From NCBI GenBank assembly GCA_946965045.2, contig OX337233.1, forward strand, positions 3,797,473 to 3,861,472: a DNA stretch of 64,000 nt, read 5' to 3'. This document shows positions 4,249 to 64,000 of the stretch, piece by piece. Numbering within the stretch: the first letter of the stretch is position 1; each line of letters opens with the position of its first letter. Made by a program: the position numbers and the translations under genes. This DNA comes from Epithemia pelagica. Lineage: Eukaryota > Protista > Bacillariophyta. The notes under the pieces were generated by a model, which worked only from the letters and a program-made list of their open reading frames with translations, ran no database searches and was not told where the DNA came from.

Positions 4249-4660
4249 TGTCTAGAAACACGGGTGTGGTTTGTCAAACTGCAATCTATACTGCACTGGA
4301 GTATGTCGTGTGGGACTAGGGCTAGCACGGATTGTGGACTTTTGCAACAACTCAAAGTAATTATGATCTATTCATGACACATGTAAACTATGTAGCTACG
4401 TAGAAAAAAGACACTATGCCAACCAGCTACAGGCTCGGTTTTGGAACACGCAATTTCCCCAAACTCTCTCGTATTGACAACGGGGTCTCTCATCATCTTT
4501 GGACCAAGACAGACGACCTTGAAACAATGAGAAATGACCTGTAACACGGATAATTTCTCACCAAATCACATTCCTGGACATTTATGAAGAAGGATCTTGC
4601 TCTTGAGGTGCTTGAATCAAATATTCCACATGGTTTGGCATGCATATTTCCCAGTGTTCC

Positions 4661-56963: not shown

Positions 56964-57629
56964 TCAGCAAAGTCATATGCACTCGTACATACGAGTGGTA
57001 AAACTGGTCTATTGAAAATTATGATATCTAGGTCCATCTGTCTCTTCTATGTGCGACTGCTGCACACTTTGCTGAGTCCCCCCAAACGGAACATACCATA
57101 TTTCCGTTTGTTGAATGGGTGCATCAGTTGTATTCTCGTAAAAACGAAGGGAACCGTCAAACCTGCTGAAACCACTCCTCGAGTGGATGGAACTGATGCA
57201 TTGGACGTCTCAATCATGATCTGTCAGGTCATATATGATTAGACCTAACAGATGATCACGCTTCTGCCCACCTGGCAGGACCTTTGTTGCAACATCGGCT
57301 GGATTCATTGTCGTTGAGATGTGTGTCGTCAAACATTCTCCCATTGCCACAGATTCGCGTACCGCATGATAGCATATTGAATTCGACTTCTTTTTGAGGA
57401 CGGATTCAGGCCGTTGGGTATTGTGAATCACGCTCATATTGTCTCCATAGACGAGCGCTGGTCCGGACACTGGGATGCCCATCATCCTCAGCTTATATCT
57501 CAGACCTCGGACAGCTTCCACACCGGTCTTCATTGCAACAAACTCCGCTCCGAACACTGACGTCTCAATGGTTGCTTGCCGCTTCGTGTACCACACAATG
57601 GGCGACATGTTGAGATAAATTAGAAAACC
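56964..57629 (-). mobile_element. 5'-truncated Ty1/copia (CoDi-type) remnant: RNase H end, PPT and candidate 3' LTR
   Basis: GFLIYLNMSPIVWYTKRQATIETSVFGAEFVAM...GDNMSV...KKKSNSICYHAVRE...NPADVATK is Copia RNase H (stop at 57210). The PPT TTTGGGGGGAC is at 57086-57076. A 112-bp segment (57075-56964) is bounded by a 10-bp inverted repeat. Confidence 0.85.
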
Positions 57630-58278
57630 CTAAGGATATTTCACTTTTTTGGGAGCTTTTAGTACTAGAGACCGTAGAATTTGAACGTGTGCATATGAGC
57701 ACAAAATCCTATAGTGCCTGTTGCATATGAGCAAGGATTTGTTGCGGATGAGCTGCAATTTGTTATGCTTTTGTTGCGATTGAGCAGTGGCCTTGTCTAT
57801 GCCCCTTTGACCACTCCCCAAAAGCAGTCATATTCAATATGCTCTATACTGGCCAAATACTTTTCAGAGCTCTGCCAGTTAGGTTTTTGTCTTGCCCTAC
57901 TCTACATAGAAGAATCAACGTAAGATTGAATTTCCTTTGGTTTGCTGTACAAAATTTCCTTGTTACAACAAACCAGCTAATATGTGTGTACAAGTGACAT
58001 ATATTTGTACACAAATGACCAACTAAATTTTTTGTACAATCTTTTTTCCCGCCAAATGACGCTGGCATTTCACAGAAAAATCTCATTTCACCCATCACTA
58101 GTTCTCATCAAAATCCCATTTTGACCATTCCTAGTTTATGCCTCTAGGTCTTTGTACCTACCCATCATTCGTCCAGTAAATTGGGCCCAATGCAATTCTG
58201 CAAAGGGTCATCACTCCCTTTCTTTGATGAACGATGAAAGATGTCTCTTGAACACTCTCAGCAAAACCTCTATCGACA

Positions 58279-61200
58279 ATGGCTTCCCCCTCTAATAATG
58301 GGCCAGGGACTCCTTCTCCATCAAGGAGGAGACCAACGAAGAAAAAAAAGGAAGAGGACAAACTACAGGCTGTCGATGTCACGCTAGTGACCCCCTTTGG
58401 TATGGGATGTCGCCTATGTGGGAAACCGTTCGGAACCAGTCTATGGTCCATGCAAAGGCACCTTAATGGCCATGGTGTGTCTGTCTCACGTTCTGAAAGC
58501 CAGACACTGATAAAACATCAAATGACCCTCCTTCAAGGTGTTATGCAAGACATTTCAAGTGTCTCTGAATATATGACGGGGGAAAAGGTCAAGGGCTATT
58601 CATGTCATTGTCTTGTTGGGAGCTTGAAACTTCAAAATGTGTACAGACATTTGTCCTCGGGTCGTACCTGCGGTGCTCCCTCCCCTACAGAAGAGGAACT
58701 ACAAATCAGTACCTGTGGCCGTATGATTTCCCTCAAGGCATTACAGATCAAGTATTCCTGTCAAGAAGCCCCTTCACTCAAAACAAGCACACAACTACAA
58801 GCAACTCTTCATGTACTCCCCGATATGATGGGGTGTTTCGTACCCCTTTTCCATCCCTTGGCCCAAGACGAACCTTACCCATCCAGGCCCAAGGGAAGGT
58901 CATTCAAGGAACGAGTGCATTTCTTATATGACTCCATCAACTTGAAACACATCATCGACAATCAACCACTCTTTGATTTGTTGTACCATCAAGGAGAAAA
59001 CTGGCTCACAGCACAGGCTGCCCTCCATGTCCAGATGGTTCCAGCAAATTACCGATCAAGGCTGTTGGTCTTTGATGGAGCAAGAAGTCCCAATGCGATT
59101 TCTACTTTCACCTTAACTGCATACCCCAAAAGACTTCTCCCCGAGTTCAAGAAATTGCTCTCGTTCCTGTGTCAAAGCAACCACAAACTTCTGCCACTCA
59201 CTAGAGATATTCCCTCTTTACTGGCAAAGCTTTGTTTAGAAACAGTGGATTCTGTTCAGCATCATACCACAGTCATGACCTACTGCGCGGGGAGAGTTGT
59301 CCGGGGGCAAGAAGGTTCAGAGACACTTTCTGTTTGGAGTCCCTCCTACATTGCGACAATGCTGTCAGCCATTTTGGCCATGCTTCGGGCCAGTATTTGC
59401 TCAATGATATACTTCATGGGACGGGGCTACCATGAGAAAGCTTCTCGGCTGGTGGAAAATGTTCAAAACTCCATCACAGTCAATTTTTTGGCAAGTACGA
59501 TTCGGCGTATGCGGGAGAGAGAGTCGCTCACACCGTCTTCACGGAAAGTGTCCCTTCAAGACAACTACGATATACTTGTTGATGGTTTTATGTTCAAGTT
59601 TCAAAAATGGTCGAACGTCATTCCGATCATCTTTGACAAGTTGGTTGCTTCACTTTGCAAGGTGATCAAGGGTAATCGTTGGGTGAATCTACTGAATCGA
59701 CGATATCCACTGTTCGTGTGTTGGAGTTCTATGGGCAAGACAACAATGACTTTGGCATCGGGTCACAATAATTACTCCCAAGAGGATATTGTTCTTCAGG
59801 ACGACTATGATCTCTGCGACATTGATGTCCTTGCCTCCTATTTGGAATTGGCATTTCATGGAACAGGTTTGGGGTCCATGCGATACACTGAAATTTCTCG
59901 TAGCCTGTTTTCTGACGTGCGGTGGCATGGAGGCTGTGTGTATTACTACTCACACAGTGAAAAAGCGTTCAGTGTTCACCACAAAGGTAAAAATTTGATT
60001 GAGCACAAACTTTGCATGACCTTGAGTCGAGCATACATGGTCTTTCGAGTGCTATGTGAACTTCGCCATGAATCTCTTGGTTGCCTTGTTCCTGTGAGAA
60101 ATAATCGGGCATTCTACATGGGTGATGCTGTGGCAACCATCTTTGGGTTTGAGGATCGCCCGGACTGTACACAAATCAGGCATTTGTGGACATCTGTGTC
60201 CAATGTACTTTTTCCCCAGGTGGATGAGACAGCAATACATAACCAGCATACAACTCAGATGGTCGCAGAGCAGTCGGGTCATAGTTATTGGACCCATAGA
60301 GATCATTATGGATCTCTATCCGGAAACACGAAAGAGGAGTTGTTCATGATATACCACAAGGCTTTGGGAGAAAAATTGGTTCAGAAAGAGACAGTCATTG
60401 CGAAGGGACTCAGTGACGAACAGATACTACTCACATTACGTAAACTGTTTGGGCCTGCTGCCAATTACACTTGCGACCAGCAGCGGGACATGTTGCACTA
60501 CACTTGCTCGGAATATGAGAGACATGGTCACTTTGGCTTGCCGTGTGGAGGGGGTAAATCGATGTCATGGATTTTGCCAACAACCGGGGTGAGGTTGTAT
60601 GGAACCAAACAACAGACAACACTAGTCATTGTTCCCTATAAATTCCTGGCGGGATATCATGACGAGAGTATGATATCTACAGCGAAACAGACTAAAGTTG
60701 ATGTCAGATCAGTGACTTTGACAGCATCAGATTTCTCATTGGGTGAATTACCAGATGTCATTTCTGACATGAAGAACCTTCCCGATGTCGTCTTCATGAG
60801 CTTGGATGCAATTTGGGTGTTGGAACGAAATCACTCGTTCATTCTAAAAGAGTGGGTGACGGCGGGAAAGCTGGGAAGGATCATTGTGGATGAGATTCAC
60901 ACTATTTACTCAGAAATTGGGTTTCGTACACGATTGGAATGTTTGCCTCGGTTGGCAAAATATGAAGTGCCCATTATGACCTTGAGTGGTTCTTTGCCAC
61001 GGAGATTTCTTCCCCCATTAATGAAATATTTGGCCTTATCTAAGGGGACCTTGGATGACATGACAATCTCGCACTCCGACAGGGTTTTGGGTTCCTTCCC
61101 ATCTGGTTTTCGGTTCTCGGTAGTGGTTGATGTCGCTATTCGTTACAAATTCAAAGATTTTATTCAATCCACCATGAACTCTTTTACTCGATTGGGACAT

Positions 61201-62202
61201 GGGATTCATGTCATTGTTGCTTCTAAGCAGCTTGGGATGGATGTTGTTGCAAGTTTGGAAGAAATGTCCCTTGGTCCCGTGGAGTTCGTAACATCGGAGA
61301 CAACAACGAGCAAGCAACGTGCTATTGCCAAGAGATGGTCGGCTTCAGCGATATCAATTCTAGTTTCTTCAACAGTGGCATTGGTGGGCAACGAGAATCC
61401 AAAGTGCCATTGTGTGGTCGTGGTTGGCCATTTGTTTTCCTTGATGTCTGTGGTTCAAGCACTGGGAAGACTTCGTCCCAAACAACGTACTGGGACTTCA
61501 TCCTTTGTGATATTTGCAAACAAATTATCATCAACACGACAAGCGGCAATGGAGAAGGAGGAGATGATGAACTTCCATCGGTTGAGAGAGCTTTGTGTTA
61601 TTGATACCAGTAACGAACAAGATTACATGCAAATTGGAACCATAAAAGGTCTTGTGGACTGGGAGACTGAGAGAGGGAAGTGTCGGGTTGTATCTTTGGC
61701 TGGCAAATTTGGCTCGACGTACGAACAGTGCAACGTATGTGATGTATGTATTGGAAGGCAAAAAATGATCCCTGTAAAAGTAGTTGGAAGCCAAGCCAAA
61801 CAAAAGGAAGAGATTCGTACTACGCAAGTAAATGATGCTATGCTTGTCTTAATGACTTTGAAGGAACGATGTCTTGTGTGTGGTCGGAGAGAATGCCAAG
61901 GTGATGCCTGTTTGACGAAGGGTTGTTTCAATTGCGGGGGAGACCATTTTCGAAGGGACTGTCGGTTCAGTGATTTCTTGACTAACCATTACAAAGGCAG
62001 GATTTGCTACAAGTGTCTCGATTATCATGAGAGACCAGGGTACCAGTCTCATTCGTTGTCAAATTGTCCCTTGAAGAACCGACTGAAGAGACTCCTCATA
62101 TCAGGATCTGTACAAGCTCAGTGCTCACTCGCAGACTACATGGCCACAGTCTACACAAGCGAAAGCACATTCATGGCTTTCCTTGCAAAATCTAAAGTAT
62201 AA
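58279..62202 (+). CDS. Telomere-linked fusion protein: C2H2 finger, tyrosine-recombinase-like domain, RecQ-type SF2 helicase and C-terminal Zn fingers
   Basis: C44/C47/H61/H65 form the finger. YR-like motifs are GSMR535YTEI, K562, TQIR634H, SGH668S and Y677. Helicase motifs are LPCGGGK760S, D871EIH and Q1060ALGR. The RecQ Zn-binding motif is C1135R...C1151xxC1154DxC1157, followed by CxxC..H..C knuckles. The ORF is intronless and points toward the telomere. Confidence 0.85.
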   Translation: MASPSNNGPGTPSPSRRRPTKKKKEEDKLQAVDVTLVTPFGMGCRLCGKPFGTSLWSMQRHLNGHGVSVSRSESQTLIKHQMTLLQGVMQDISSVSEYMTGEKVKGYSCHCLVGSLKLQNVYRHLSSGRTCGAPSPTEEELQISTCGRMISLKALQIKYSCQEAPSLKTSTQLQATLHVLPDMMGCFVPLFHPLAQDEPYPSRPKGRSFKERVHFLYDSINLKHIIDNQPLFDLLYHQGENWLTAQAALHVQMVPANYRSRLLVFDGARSPNAISTFTLTAYPKRLLPEFKKLLSFLCQSNHKLLPLTRDIPSLLAKLCLETVDSVQHHTTVMTYCAGRVVRGQEGSETLSVWSPSYIATMLSAILAMLRASICSMIYFMGRGYHEKASRLVENVQNSITVNFLASTIRRMRERESLTPSSRKVSLQDNYDILVDGFMFKFQKWSNVIPIIFDKLVASLCKVIKGNRWVNLLNRRYPLFVCWSSMGKTTMTLASGHNNYSQEDIVLQDDYDLCDIDVLASYLELAFHGTGLGSMRYTEISRSLFSDVRWHGGCVYYYSHSEKAFSVHHKGKNLIEHKLCMTLSRAYMVFRVLCELRHESLGCLVPVRNNRAFYMGDAVATIFGFEDRPDCTQIRHLWTSVSNVLFPQVDETAIHNQHTTQMVAEQSGHSYWTHRDHYGSLSGNTKEELFMIYHKALGEKLVQKETVIAKGLSDEQILLTLRKLFGPAANYTCDQQRDMLHYTCSEYERHGHFGLPCGGGKSMSWILPTTGVRLYGTKQQTTLVIVPYKFLAGYHDESMISTAKQTKVDVRSVTLTASDFSLGELPDVISDMKNLPDVVFMSLDAIWVLERNHSFILKEWVTAGKLGRIIVDEIHTIYSEIGFRTRLECLPRLAKYEVPIMTLSGSLPRRFLPPLMKYLALSKGTLDDMTISHSDRVLGSFPSGFRFSVVVDVAIRYKFKDFIQSTMNSFTRLGHGIHVIVASKQLGMDVVASLEEMSLGPVEFVTSETTTSKQRAIAKRWSASAISILVSSTVALVGNENPKCHCVVVVGHLFSLMSVVQALGRLRPKQRTGTSSFVIFANKLSSTRQAAMEKEEMMNFHRLRELCVIDTSNEQDYMQIGTIKGLVDWETERGKCRVVSLAGKFGSTYEQCNVCDVCIGRQKMIPVKVVGSQAKQKEEIRTTQVNDAMLVLMTLKERCLVCGRRECQGDACLTKGCFNCGGDHFRRDCRFSDFLTNHYKGRICYKCLDYHERPGYQSHSLSNCPLKNRLKRLLISGSVQAQCSLADYMATVYTSESTFMAFLAKSKV

Positions 62203-62250
62203 GTTTACATAATACCATTCGTTGCGATGTGAGTATTCGGGTTAGTGGAA

Positions 62251-63485
62251 GGTGTGTTTCGTGCAGTGCGAACTTGGAGTATAGTGTTGTGGATATTGTG
62301 GACTTGTGATTTGAGTGTGAATTTGAGTGAGATGTCAATATGCGACATGATTCGCAAGTAATGTGTCTTGAAGATATTAGAATGGTCTATCTATTGATGT
62401 TTTGCGATTTTTGTTCACCAAGTGGCCAGGTGTGTTTCGTGCAGTGCGAACTTGGTGTATAGTGTTGTGGATATTGTGGACTTGTGTTTTGAGTGTGAAT
62501 TTGAGTGAGATGTCAATATGCGACATGATTCGCAAGTAATGTGTCTTGAAGATATTAGAATGGTCTATCTATTGATGTTTTGCGATTTTTGTTCACCAAG
62601 TGGCCAGGTGTGTTTCGTTCAGTGCGAACTTGGTGTATAGTGTTGTGGATATTGTGGACTTGTGTTTTGAGTGTGAATTTGAGTGAGATGTCAATATGCG
62701 ACATGATTCGCAAGTAATGTGTCTTGAAGATATTAGAATGGTCTATCTATTGATGTTTTGCGATTTTTGTTCACCAAGTGGCCAGGTGTGTTTCGTCCAG
62801 TGCGAACTTGGTGTATAGTGTTGTGGATATTGTGGACTTGTGTTTTGAATGTGAATTTGAGTGAGATGTCAATATGCAACATGATTCGCAAAGTGATATG
62901 TCTTGAAGGTATTAGAATGGTTTATCTATTGATGTTTTGCGATTTTTGTTCACCAAGTGGCCAGGTGTGTTTCGTGCAGTGCGAACTTGGTGTATAGTGT
63001 TGTGGATATTGTGGACTTGTGTTTTGAATGTGAATTTGAGTGAGATGTCAATATGCAACATGATTCGCAAAGTGATATGTCTTGAAGGTATTAGAATGGT
63101 CTATCTATTGATGTTTTGCTATTTTTGTTCACCAAGTGGCCAGGCGTGTTTCGTGCAGTGCGAACTTGGTGTATAGTGTTGTGGATATTGTGGACTTGTG
63201 TTTTGAGTGTGAATTTGAGTGAGATGTCAATATGCGACATGATTCGCAAGTGATATGTCTTGAAGATATGAGAATGGTTTATCTATTGATGTTTTGCGAT
63301 TTTTGTTCACCAAGTGGCCAGGTGTGTTTCGTGCAGTGCGAACTTGGTGTATAGTGTTGTGGATATTGTGGACTTGTGTTTTGAGTGTGAATTTGAGTGA
63401 GATGTCAATATGCGACATGATTCGCAAGTAATGTGTCTTGAAGATATTAGAATGGTCTATCTATTGATGTTTTGCGATTTTTGTT
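62251..63485 (+). repeat. Subtelomeric satellite, 178-179 bp x 7 (last unit truncated)
   Basis: Units start at 62251, 62429, 62607, 62785, 62964, 63143 and 63321. The + strand is strongly G+T-rich. Confidence 0.96.
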
Positions 63486-64000
63486 AGGGTTAGGGTTAGG
63501 GTTAGGGTTAGGGTTAGGGTTAGGGTTAGGGTTAGGGTTAGGGTTAGGGTTAGGGTTAGGGTTAGGGTTAGGGTTAGGGTTAGGGTTAGGGTTAGGGTTA
63601 GGGTTAGGGTTAGGGTTAGGGTTAGGGTTAGGGTTAGGGTTAGGGTTAGGGTTAGGGTTAGGGTTAGGGTTAGGGTTAGGGTTAGGGTTAGGGTTAGGGT
63701 TAGGGTTAGGGTTAGGGTTAGGGTTAGGGTTAGGGTTAGGGTTAGGGTTAGGGTTAGGGTTAGGGTTAGGGTTAGGGTTAGGGTTAGGGTTAGGGTTAGG
63801 GTTAGGGTTAGGGTTAGGGTTAGGGTTAGGGTTAGGGTTAGGGTTAGGGTTAGGGTTAGGGTTAGGGTTAGGGTTAGGGTTAGGGTTAGGGTTAGGGTTA
63901 GGGTTAGGGTTAGGGTTAGGGTTAGGGTTAGGGTTAGGGTTAGGGTTAGGGTTAGGGTTAGGGTTAGGGTTAGGGTTAGGGTTAGGGTTAGGGTTAGGGT
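63484..64000 (+). repeat. Telomere (TTAGGG)n, about 86 units to the window end
   Basis: Uninterrupted TTAGGG array with the G-rich strand running 5'->3' toward the end. Confidence 0.99.

Follow-up and report, generated by a model that had tools for sequence, protein, structure and literature searches.

The window analysed here is a stretch of 64,000 nucleotides of the diatom Epithemia pelagica (assembly GCA_946965045.2, contig OX337233.1, forward-strand positions 3,797,473 to 3,861,472). Close to its right-hand end lies a gene for a TLH-type (telomere-linked helicase) protein, and this gene is the body of an element that extends into the telomere. The open reading frame (ORF) listing and the translation gave a single frame of 1307 amino acids (aa) at 58279-62202 on the forward strand, without internal stops. 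After the stop codon come 47 bp, then 6.9 units of a 178-bp satellite (62250-63485), then 86 perfect TTAGGG units that continue to the window end. The right side of the window is a genuine chromosome end. No further gene follows the ORF, which stops 1.28 kb short of the telomere. In a comparison with a 99% identical copy, the ratio of replacement to silent changes per site (pN/pS) was 0.37, a value that rests on few changes (18 replacement, 14 silent), and the candidate catalytic residues were all spared. By this measure, the intact ORF is under purifying selection.

The terminal gene and its protein

The features of the gene, the protein and the chromosome end are as follows.

58279-62202, forward strand: ORF of the TLH-type protein, 1307 aa (translation; alignment of 16 relatives; pN/pS)
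58408-58671, forward strand: the two zinc fingers of the N-terminus, one C2H2 (aa 44-65) and one C2HC (aa 109-131) (translation, family alignment)
59011-59538, forward strand: helical domain, aa ~245-420 (aligns with the N-terminal core-binding domain of Cre)
59539-60378, forward strand: predicted tyrosine-recombinase/topoisomerase-IB-like catalytic domain, aa ~421-700, the 'TLH domain' (fold searches, invariant residues)
59881, 59962, 60178, 60280 and 60307, forward strand: candidate catalytic codons of R535, K562, R634, H668 and Y677, respectively
60481-61503, forward strand: superfamily 2 (SF2) helicase core of RecQ type, aa ~735-1075 (Pfam DEAD and Helicase_C; family profile against RECQ5 and bacterial RecQ)
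61681-61749, forward strand: RecQ zinc-binding module with C1135, C1151, C1154 and C1157 (invariant cysteines; aligned to the RECQ5 zinc module)
61870-62067, forward strand: C-terminal zinc knuckles, aa 1198-1263 (Cys and His invariant in the 16 relatives)
62250-63485, forward strand: 178-bp satellite, 6.9 units, between gene and telomere (also behind full units in contigs L011 and L012)
63483-64000, forward strand: telomere, (TTAGGG)86, up to the window end

The protein begins with two zinc fingers at the N-terminus. A two-domain region resembling Cre comes next, then a RecQ-type helicase that includes its zinc module, and zinc knuckles form the C-terminus. Sixteen full-length relatives, with identities of 26-33%, could be aligned with it end to end. 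The first finger is of the C2H2 type (C44-x2-C47-x13-H61-x3-H65), and the second, of the C2HC type (C109-x-C111-x12-H124-x6-C131), was nearly invariant among the relatives. In the whole protein, Pfam recognized only DEAD (E 1.6e-7) and Helicase_C, the latter just below the threshold. The helicase motifs GxGKS (757-761), DE (871-872) and QxxGRxxR were invariant in the 16 relatives. A profile built from their alignment matched human RECQ5 over positions 735-1188 with an E value of 3e-8, and it also matched the bacterial RecQ entries 4tmu and 1oyw. The pattern of the RecQ zinc module, C-x(15-17)-C-x2-C-x2-C, was present, and all four of its cysteines were invariant. The RecQ assignment was confirmed, because the RECQ5 match ran through the zinc module and both the cysteines and the helicase motifs were invariant. 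The zinc knuckles occupy the C-terminus in place of an HRDC domain.

A preliminary description, made from the letters of the window, had proposed an uninterrupted 1307-aa ORF as the last gene, 1.3 kb from the telomere, with an SF2 helicase, RecQ zinc-binding cysteines and further zinc knuckles, and all of these readings held. It had also named one C2H2 finger. This finger is there, at aa 44-65, but its positions needed a small correction, and the C2HC finger at aa 109-131 has to be added.

Fold and conserved residues of the middle domain

Two structure models were used to study the region before the helicase. The first covered aa 160-730 and was built from the family alignment, with a predicted local distance difference test score (pLDDT) of 70.9. 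The second covered the domain only (aa 415-712), built from a 35-sequence alignment, and reached a pLDDT of 86.7 and a predicted template modelling score (pTM) of 0.85. When the first model was compared with the PDB by Foldseek, Cre was the top match (E 9e-4, probability 1.0), and the first 35 rows were almost only Cre, XerH, XerA and topoisomerase IB. An exhaustive fold search with the domain-only model placed 30 tyrosine-recombinase/topoisomerase-IB folds first. We consider the assignment of the modelled domain to the tyrosine-recombinase/topoisomerase-IB fold to be solid.

The conservation pattern pointed in the same direction. Across 43 diverse relatives, with identities of 22-39% to the query, the only invariant columns of the domain were R535, K562, R634, H668, Y677 and G697. 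A second family alignment gave the same outcome. In the 16 full-length relatives, R535, K562, R634, H635, H668 and Y677 were all invariant. The spacing of +9 between H668 and Y677 equals that between W315 and Y324 of Cre, and VIA placed residue 509 of the model (H668) near Cre 314-315. In the hhalign alignments with Cre (P1) and XerD (Escherichia coli), R535 fell on R173 of Cre and R148 of XerD, and K562 fell on K201 of Cre. The preliminary description had placed the six residues exactly where they were found, with the same His-to-Tyr spacing, and its suspicion of a recombinase-like region agreed with both the fold search and the invariance of the five named residues.

An alternative is that only the fold is shared, and that the domain binds DNA without cutting it, like yeast Ndc10. 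A purely structural domain would be unlikely to keep exactly R, K, R, H and Y, because these, with one Gly, are all that is invariant among the 43 relatives. We give this alternative very little credence. The TLH domain is likely to contain an active site, as judged from the residues that were retained, and the fold and the residues together provide strong evidence that the middle domain is an enzyme of the tyrosine-recombinase/topoisomerase-IB type. Its catalysis, and the mobility and expression of the element, are inferred.

Relationship to TLH and Y' proteins

TLH proteins have been described as having two N-terminal C2H2 motifs and a 'TLH domain' of ~250 aa directly before the RecQ helicase, and some carry extra C-terminal zinc motifs (10.1101/2024.02.27.582403). 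The same 2024 preprint described the TLH domain, the function of these genes and their mode of spreading as unknown (10.1101/2024.02.27.582403). The published layout is identical to the architecture of the diatom ORF. The gene belongs to the TLH/Y' kind, which was already known, and is not a new gene type. Its TLH domain is assigned here as a recombinase-like catalytic domain; among the papers that could be searched, only three mentioned the TLH domain and none made this assignment. Our literature search found no report of TLH genes outside fungi and choanoflagellates, diatoms included, and no paper joining a telomere-linked helicase with a tyrosine recombinase.

Fold comparisons with predicted structures led to the same proteins. 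In the Swiss-Prot AlphaFold models, seven copies of Saccharomyces cerevisiae Y'-Help1 (YRF1) matched the aa 160-730 model with E values from 2e-7 to 2e-4 and a probability of 1.0. These matches covered the region N-terminal to the helicase and were placed ahead of XerD, XerS and XerC, so that this part of YRF1 was the best fold match of diatom aa 192-730. Schizosaccharomyces pombe tlh1 was also matched, with a probability of 0.8, as a likeness at the fold level only. Among the AlphaFold clusters, the domain model found two proteins, B8C8W7 and B8C7N0, with template modelling (TM) scores of 0.77 and 0.69; their accession style is one that we associate with a centric diatom. Further cluster matches (TM 0.5-0.6) were fungal-looking and at the fold level only, and many were named C2H2-type, DNA 3'-5' helicase or DEAD/DEAH helicase. 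In the ESM Atlas, Ascomycota clusters (TM 0.62-0.67) came ahead of bacterial and archaeal Phage_integrase clusters. The recombinase-like fold was also seen (TM 0.62) in a cluster of 621 members, mostly from Ascomycota, whose ~930-aa proteins carry a C2H2-like OrsD domain and apparently lack a helicase. When the non-helicase region was used in an exhaustive profile search, representatives of 522 clusters at 50% identity were returned, of which 171 were below 1e-30, and the protein family is thus large.

Like the diatom gene, the TLH genes known from fungi and from the choanoflagellate Monosiga (Magnaporthe TLH1, S. pombe tlh1/2, Ustilago UTASa, and those of Fusarium and Botrytis) adjoin telomeres, are multi-copy and are often truncated. 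The present case differs in its diatom host and in that a fixed terminus and a CCC junction rule were defined, while the likeness to the fungal and Monosiga genes is at the level of architecture and fold only. The Y' element of S. cerevisiae is likewise a repeated, telomere-adjacent unit with one long helicase ORF, and Y' units amplify on chromosome ends. Telomeric TG1-3 tracts lie between these units, and their movement is attributed to homologous recombination or to circles. To our knowledge, recombinase activity has not been described for Y'-Help1.

The element, its copies and the junction rule

The element comprises 57628-63485 plus the telomere, and consists of CCCTAAGG, a 651-bp leader counted from it, the one 1307-aa gene, the 178-bp satellite and the telomere. 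Its inner boundary is marked by three features.

57628-57635, forward strand: fixed terminus CCCTAAGG, holding one inverted telomere unit, with the join within or after CCC
57628-58278, forward strand: 651-bp 5' leader, which presumably holds the promoter and the 5' untranslated region (99% identity to other family-1 copies)
57210-57627, reverse strand: truncated C-terminus of a retrotransposon pol, with its frame open up to the junction; recipient DNA of the element

The boundary was defined by comparison with other copies. The 99% identical copy in L001, a 519-kb contig of another assembly, matches window positions 57624-62071, and both copies begin at CCCTAAGG. In five other contigs of this species, the same octamer heads 22 units that share one orientation, and it also starts a 6.4-kb contig of another species that encodes a 32% identical protein. 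The leaders fall into five families, four in this species and one in the other. Families 1 and 2 share only the first ~106 bp of the leader (87%), and nothing alignable is common to all five except CCCTAAG(G). On the recipient side, the uninterrupted retrotransposon was found in a read-derived contig (run X3), where it reads ...AAAACCC-GTTCGCG past 57630.

The 90% cluster of the protein contained 12 distinct sequences on at least nine contigs. In the five other loci that were fetched (L001 and four more), every unit was directed to the nearest contig end, 3-15 kb off. The gene is thus multi-copy, end-associated and end-oriented, and on this point, as on the residues and the RecQ assignment, the outcome favored the preliminary description. 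L011 showed the full structure again, with a unit, 15 satellite units and a telomere, and L012 carried two full units in tandem with satellite behind each. All eight family-1 units started at element nucleotide 1, and no unit had a recessed 5' end. Their 3' ends lay at 1253, 1717, 3156, 4444 and again 4444, or at full length. The units are therefore complete at the 5' end and truncated at the 3' end, which is the telomere side. CCCTAAGG was oriented outward 22 times and reversed three times.

For 12 junctions, the uninterrupted recipient was found elsewhere in the fetched DNA, and the window junction brought the number to 13. CCC stood exactly at the join in every one of the 13 recipients, followed by T in eight, A in four and G in one. 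With a CCC background frequency of 0.0118 per position, the chance of 13/13 is ~1e-25. A polar, one-ended, sequence-specific join with a conserved terminus is thus directly seen. These alignments provide strong evidence that the element joins chromosome ends by a site-specific rule.

The units do not only occur singly. One distal block, made up of a family-1 unit that is cut at 4444 and a family-2 unit behind it, was present both in L001 (9350-17950) and in L014 (9350-~17500), with different proximal DNA. Whole distal blocks therefore move, or the two contigs are partly allelic haplotigs.

Such shared blocks also bear on the idea of a linear replicon with a telomere resolvase, whose perfect head-to-head palindrome CCTTAGGG/CCCTAAGG would be resolved in the manner of a protelomerase, leaving a free linear element with a short end that joins chromosomes. 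Blocks of several units shared en bloc speak against unit-length free forms. The head-to-head junction was not found, with the octamer occurring 22 times forward and three times reversed and with no CCTTAGGGCCCTAAGG, and Cre, Xer and topoisomerase IB scored far above the protelomerases. We consider this explanation highly improbable.

Proposed mechanism and its alternatives

We propose that the recombinase-like domain drives a one-ended, site-specific replacement of chromosome ends with the assistance of RecQ, and we hold the chances for and against this proposal to be about equal. The domain would cut at CCC/TAAGG (the slash marks the cut) through a 3'-phosphotyrosyl link to Y677, and the cut strand would be rejoined to another chromosome at a CCC(W) site. 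The donor DNA distal to the site, including the element, stacked units, satellite and telomere, would take over the end of the recipient. The fused RecQ helicase could unwind or branch-migrate the joint, and one strand exchange, maybe finished by replication, would yield the full product. The zinc fingers would bind the subterminal repeats. The outcome would be self-propagation between chromosome ends, and damaged ends might also be re-capped. Replacement of the end would explain the 3'-truncated recipients without erosion, and a short, one-sided, pyrimidine-rich specificity would explain why joins occur at CCC with little other target requirement.

Two other routes to such junctions were rejected. 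Attachment of the retrotransposon type was excluded by orientation and gene content, since the element has no reverse transcriptase, is joined by its 5' end and is 3'-truncated. As to telomerase healing, the strand polarity at the proximal junction does not allow it: the outward 3' end of the recipient finishes in CCC, and the junction carries a C-strand unit.

Several observations weigh against end replacement by a recombinase-like enzyme. Concerning the domain, the TM-scores in Foldseek were low (0.3-0.45), and an additional beta-rich insert is present compared with the recombinases. The hhalign probability against Cre and XerD was just 1-14% (14% for Cre), though the register was right. A Pfam scan of the catalytic regions of the 43 members at E<=10 gave no recombinase family, and an HMMER search of PDB sequences with the domain profile matched no recombinase. 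The HxxR motif lacks its His; the residue three places before R634 is Thr631, at a position that varies in the family. In topoisomerase IB, this His-II position is Lys. Concerning the element, the conserved site is one-sided, without an inverted repeat or a second binding arm, which is atypical for a Cre-type system and nearer to topoisomerase IB. No extrachromosomal or excised form was seen. The metagenome contigs of distant relatives (L002 and L004-L008) contained neither CCCTAAGG nor telomere repeats. Some of the supposed copies may be alleles on the haplotypes of a single diploid assembly. No RNA evidence for the gene was obtained, and the runs found to contain the sequence were DNA-like. 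Finally, a 3-4-nt CCC overlap could also be produced by microhomology-primed copying by host enzymes.

This last point leads to the main rival, the classical explanation of the Y' and TLH families. On this view, and as in yeast Y', the copies spread passively through host recombination between chromosome ends (break-induced replication, gene conversion or microhomology-mediated end joining). The work of the recombinase-like domain would then be another, for example on telomeric DNA, which it might relax or process for the helicase, and it would not make the junction. The junction overlaps of 3-5 nt fit microhomology-primed synthesis, entire distal blocks are common to different ends, and the missing excised form is also in keeping with passive spread. 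Such a process, however, would not always take the first three bases of the element, nor always choose CCC, as happened in 13 of 13 junctions without a recessed 5' end. It also leaves the terminal octamer, which was kept across unalignable leaders and across species, and the active-site set, which with one Gly is the only invariant part of the domain, without an explanation. We regard passive spread as rather unlikely.

The gene might also be a domesticated host factor for telomere maintenance, a backup akin to alternative lengthening of telomeres, whose recombinase and helicase would act on telomeric or satellite DNA to rebuild ends when telomerase fails, with the stacks of units as a by-product. 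An intact ORF under purifying selection and a telomere unit inside the fixed terminus would suit such a role. In the literature, telomerase-deficient yeast induces Y'-Help1, and Ustilago survivors show a response of their TLH genes. One genome, however, holds many diverged families and many truncated copies, and TLH in Botrytis is present or absent between strains according to the literature. A selfish element therefore fits better than a single host function, and we think a host factor quite unlikely, although the selfish-element and host-factor readings are not mutually exclusive.

Comparison with other recombining and end-building systems

Tyrosine recombinases such as Cre, XerC/D/H/A, Flp and lambda Int share with the diatom domain a two-domain, clamp-like fold and an Arg-Lys-Arg-His-Tyr set that agrees in its order and spacing. 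The diatom domain differs from them in lacking profile-level similarity and the HxxR His, in its fusion to a helicase and in its extra beta-rich insert. Its site is one-sided, without an inverted-repeat core, and its proposed product is end replacement rather than excision and integration. Cryptons are eukaryotic DNA elements that insert internally and rely on a tyrosine recombinase as their only enzyme. The present element was considered as a Crypton and rejected, as its protein is fused to a RecQ helicase and its copies are terminal and one-ended.

Poxvirus topoisomerase IB shows a monomer-style, one-sided, pyrimidine-rich specificity at the scissile bond, to which the CCC joins of the diatom element can be likened. 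The vaccinia topoisomerase cleaves at CCCTT, and the cleaved end can be joined to heterologous DNA with a 5'-OH. By this analogy, the specificity of the diatom element may be more like that of poxvirus topoisomerase IB than that of Cre. We know of no type IB topoisomerase that serves as an element-encoded end-joining enzyme of eukaryotic chromosomes.

Telomeric retrotransposons (HeT-A/TART of Drosophila, SART/TRAS of Bombyx, and the Athena/Terminons of rotifers) likewise form polar stacks of truncated elements at chromosome ends, and they can replace or supplement telomerase. They are RNA-mediated, attach by the 3' end and are 5'-truncated. In the diatom element, which lacks a reverse transcriptase, the 5' end is the attached one and truncation affects the 3' end.

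Flanking and subterminal sequences

The recipient pol fragment at 57210-57627 is probably copia-like, from our reading of its YHAVRE...ADVATK motif; Pfam gave no match to this fragment. It was multi-copy in the reads, and the element is joined to it at CCC. Neither terminal inverted repeats nor long direct repeats were found on the flanks of the element in the window.

Subterminal direct repeats that differ by leader family were observed not more than ~200 bp from the CCCTAAGG end (window 57690-57800; L001 3083-3260). Families 1 and 2 have three to four GCATATGAGCA-like motifs, and family 3 has GACCACAAAAAGGTC-ATTT three times. The zinc fingers or the recombinase-like domain could bind to these repeats. 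The ATGAGCA subterminal motif was not enriched across the window and is a local observation only. In L013 (8185-12505), a family-1 unit contains an insertion of ~1.17 kb between element positions ~124 and ~130, possibly another mobile element in the leader.

At the outer end, the telomere begins within a satellite unit (window 63440-63490), where the sequence reads ...GCGATTTTTGT/TAGGGTTAGGG and the satellite would go on with TTCACC. The GTT/TT overlap at this boundary looks like ordinary de novo telomere addition by telomerase to a break inside the satellite. The read runs that hold the sequence were DNA-like assemblies with contigs of up to 0.5 Mb, and their summed word depths are not copy numbers. 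In these terms, the satellite reached thousands to tens of thousands, against ~500-1300 for the gene (window 62216-62600). In other contigs, different sequences preceded the satellite. The high word depth and the varied preceding sequences suggest that the satellite probably lies at many ends or in long arrays.

On the short contigs of the relatives with 26-33% identity, a second ORF of ~290-560 aa lies just downstream of the helicase gene; in the diatom element, the 178-bp satellite takes its place. Pfam found no family in the following second ORFs.

L002, 5241-6284: second ORF
L003, 4531-6210: second ORF
L004, 5222-6088: second ORF
L006, 5838-6737: second ORF
L007, 3980-4885: second ORF

Implications

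The window contains a well-preserved member of the TLH/Y' kind in a diatom, and the finding brings the TLH family to this group. The enzymatic mechanism that we infer for it is well motivated by the fold, the retained residues and the junctions. TLH genes and Y' elements have been familiar for decades while their middle domain stayed unexplained, and the enzyme assignment and the junction rule now make the question experimental. In particular, a fixed CCCTAAGG end that is always joined at CCC, together with the assignment to an enzyme family, suggests how the puzzling TLH genes spread.

More tentatively, and with somewhat more doubt than confidence, we suggest that TLH genes and yeast Y' belong to one ancient, eukaryote-wide class of DNA mobile element, present in diatoms, fungi and choanoflagellates, which would use its recombinase-like enzyme and RecQ for end replacement from CCC/TAAGG to CCC(W). 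If this is true, it would be a third way of building chromosome ends besides telomerase and retrotransposition. If the enzyme acts as its anatomy suggests, the element would represent a new class of DNA mobile element and a telomerase-independent route for capping chromosome ends, and its protein would be a natural 'attach a telomere here' enzyme.

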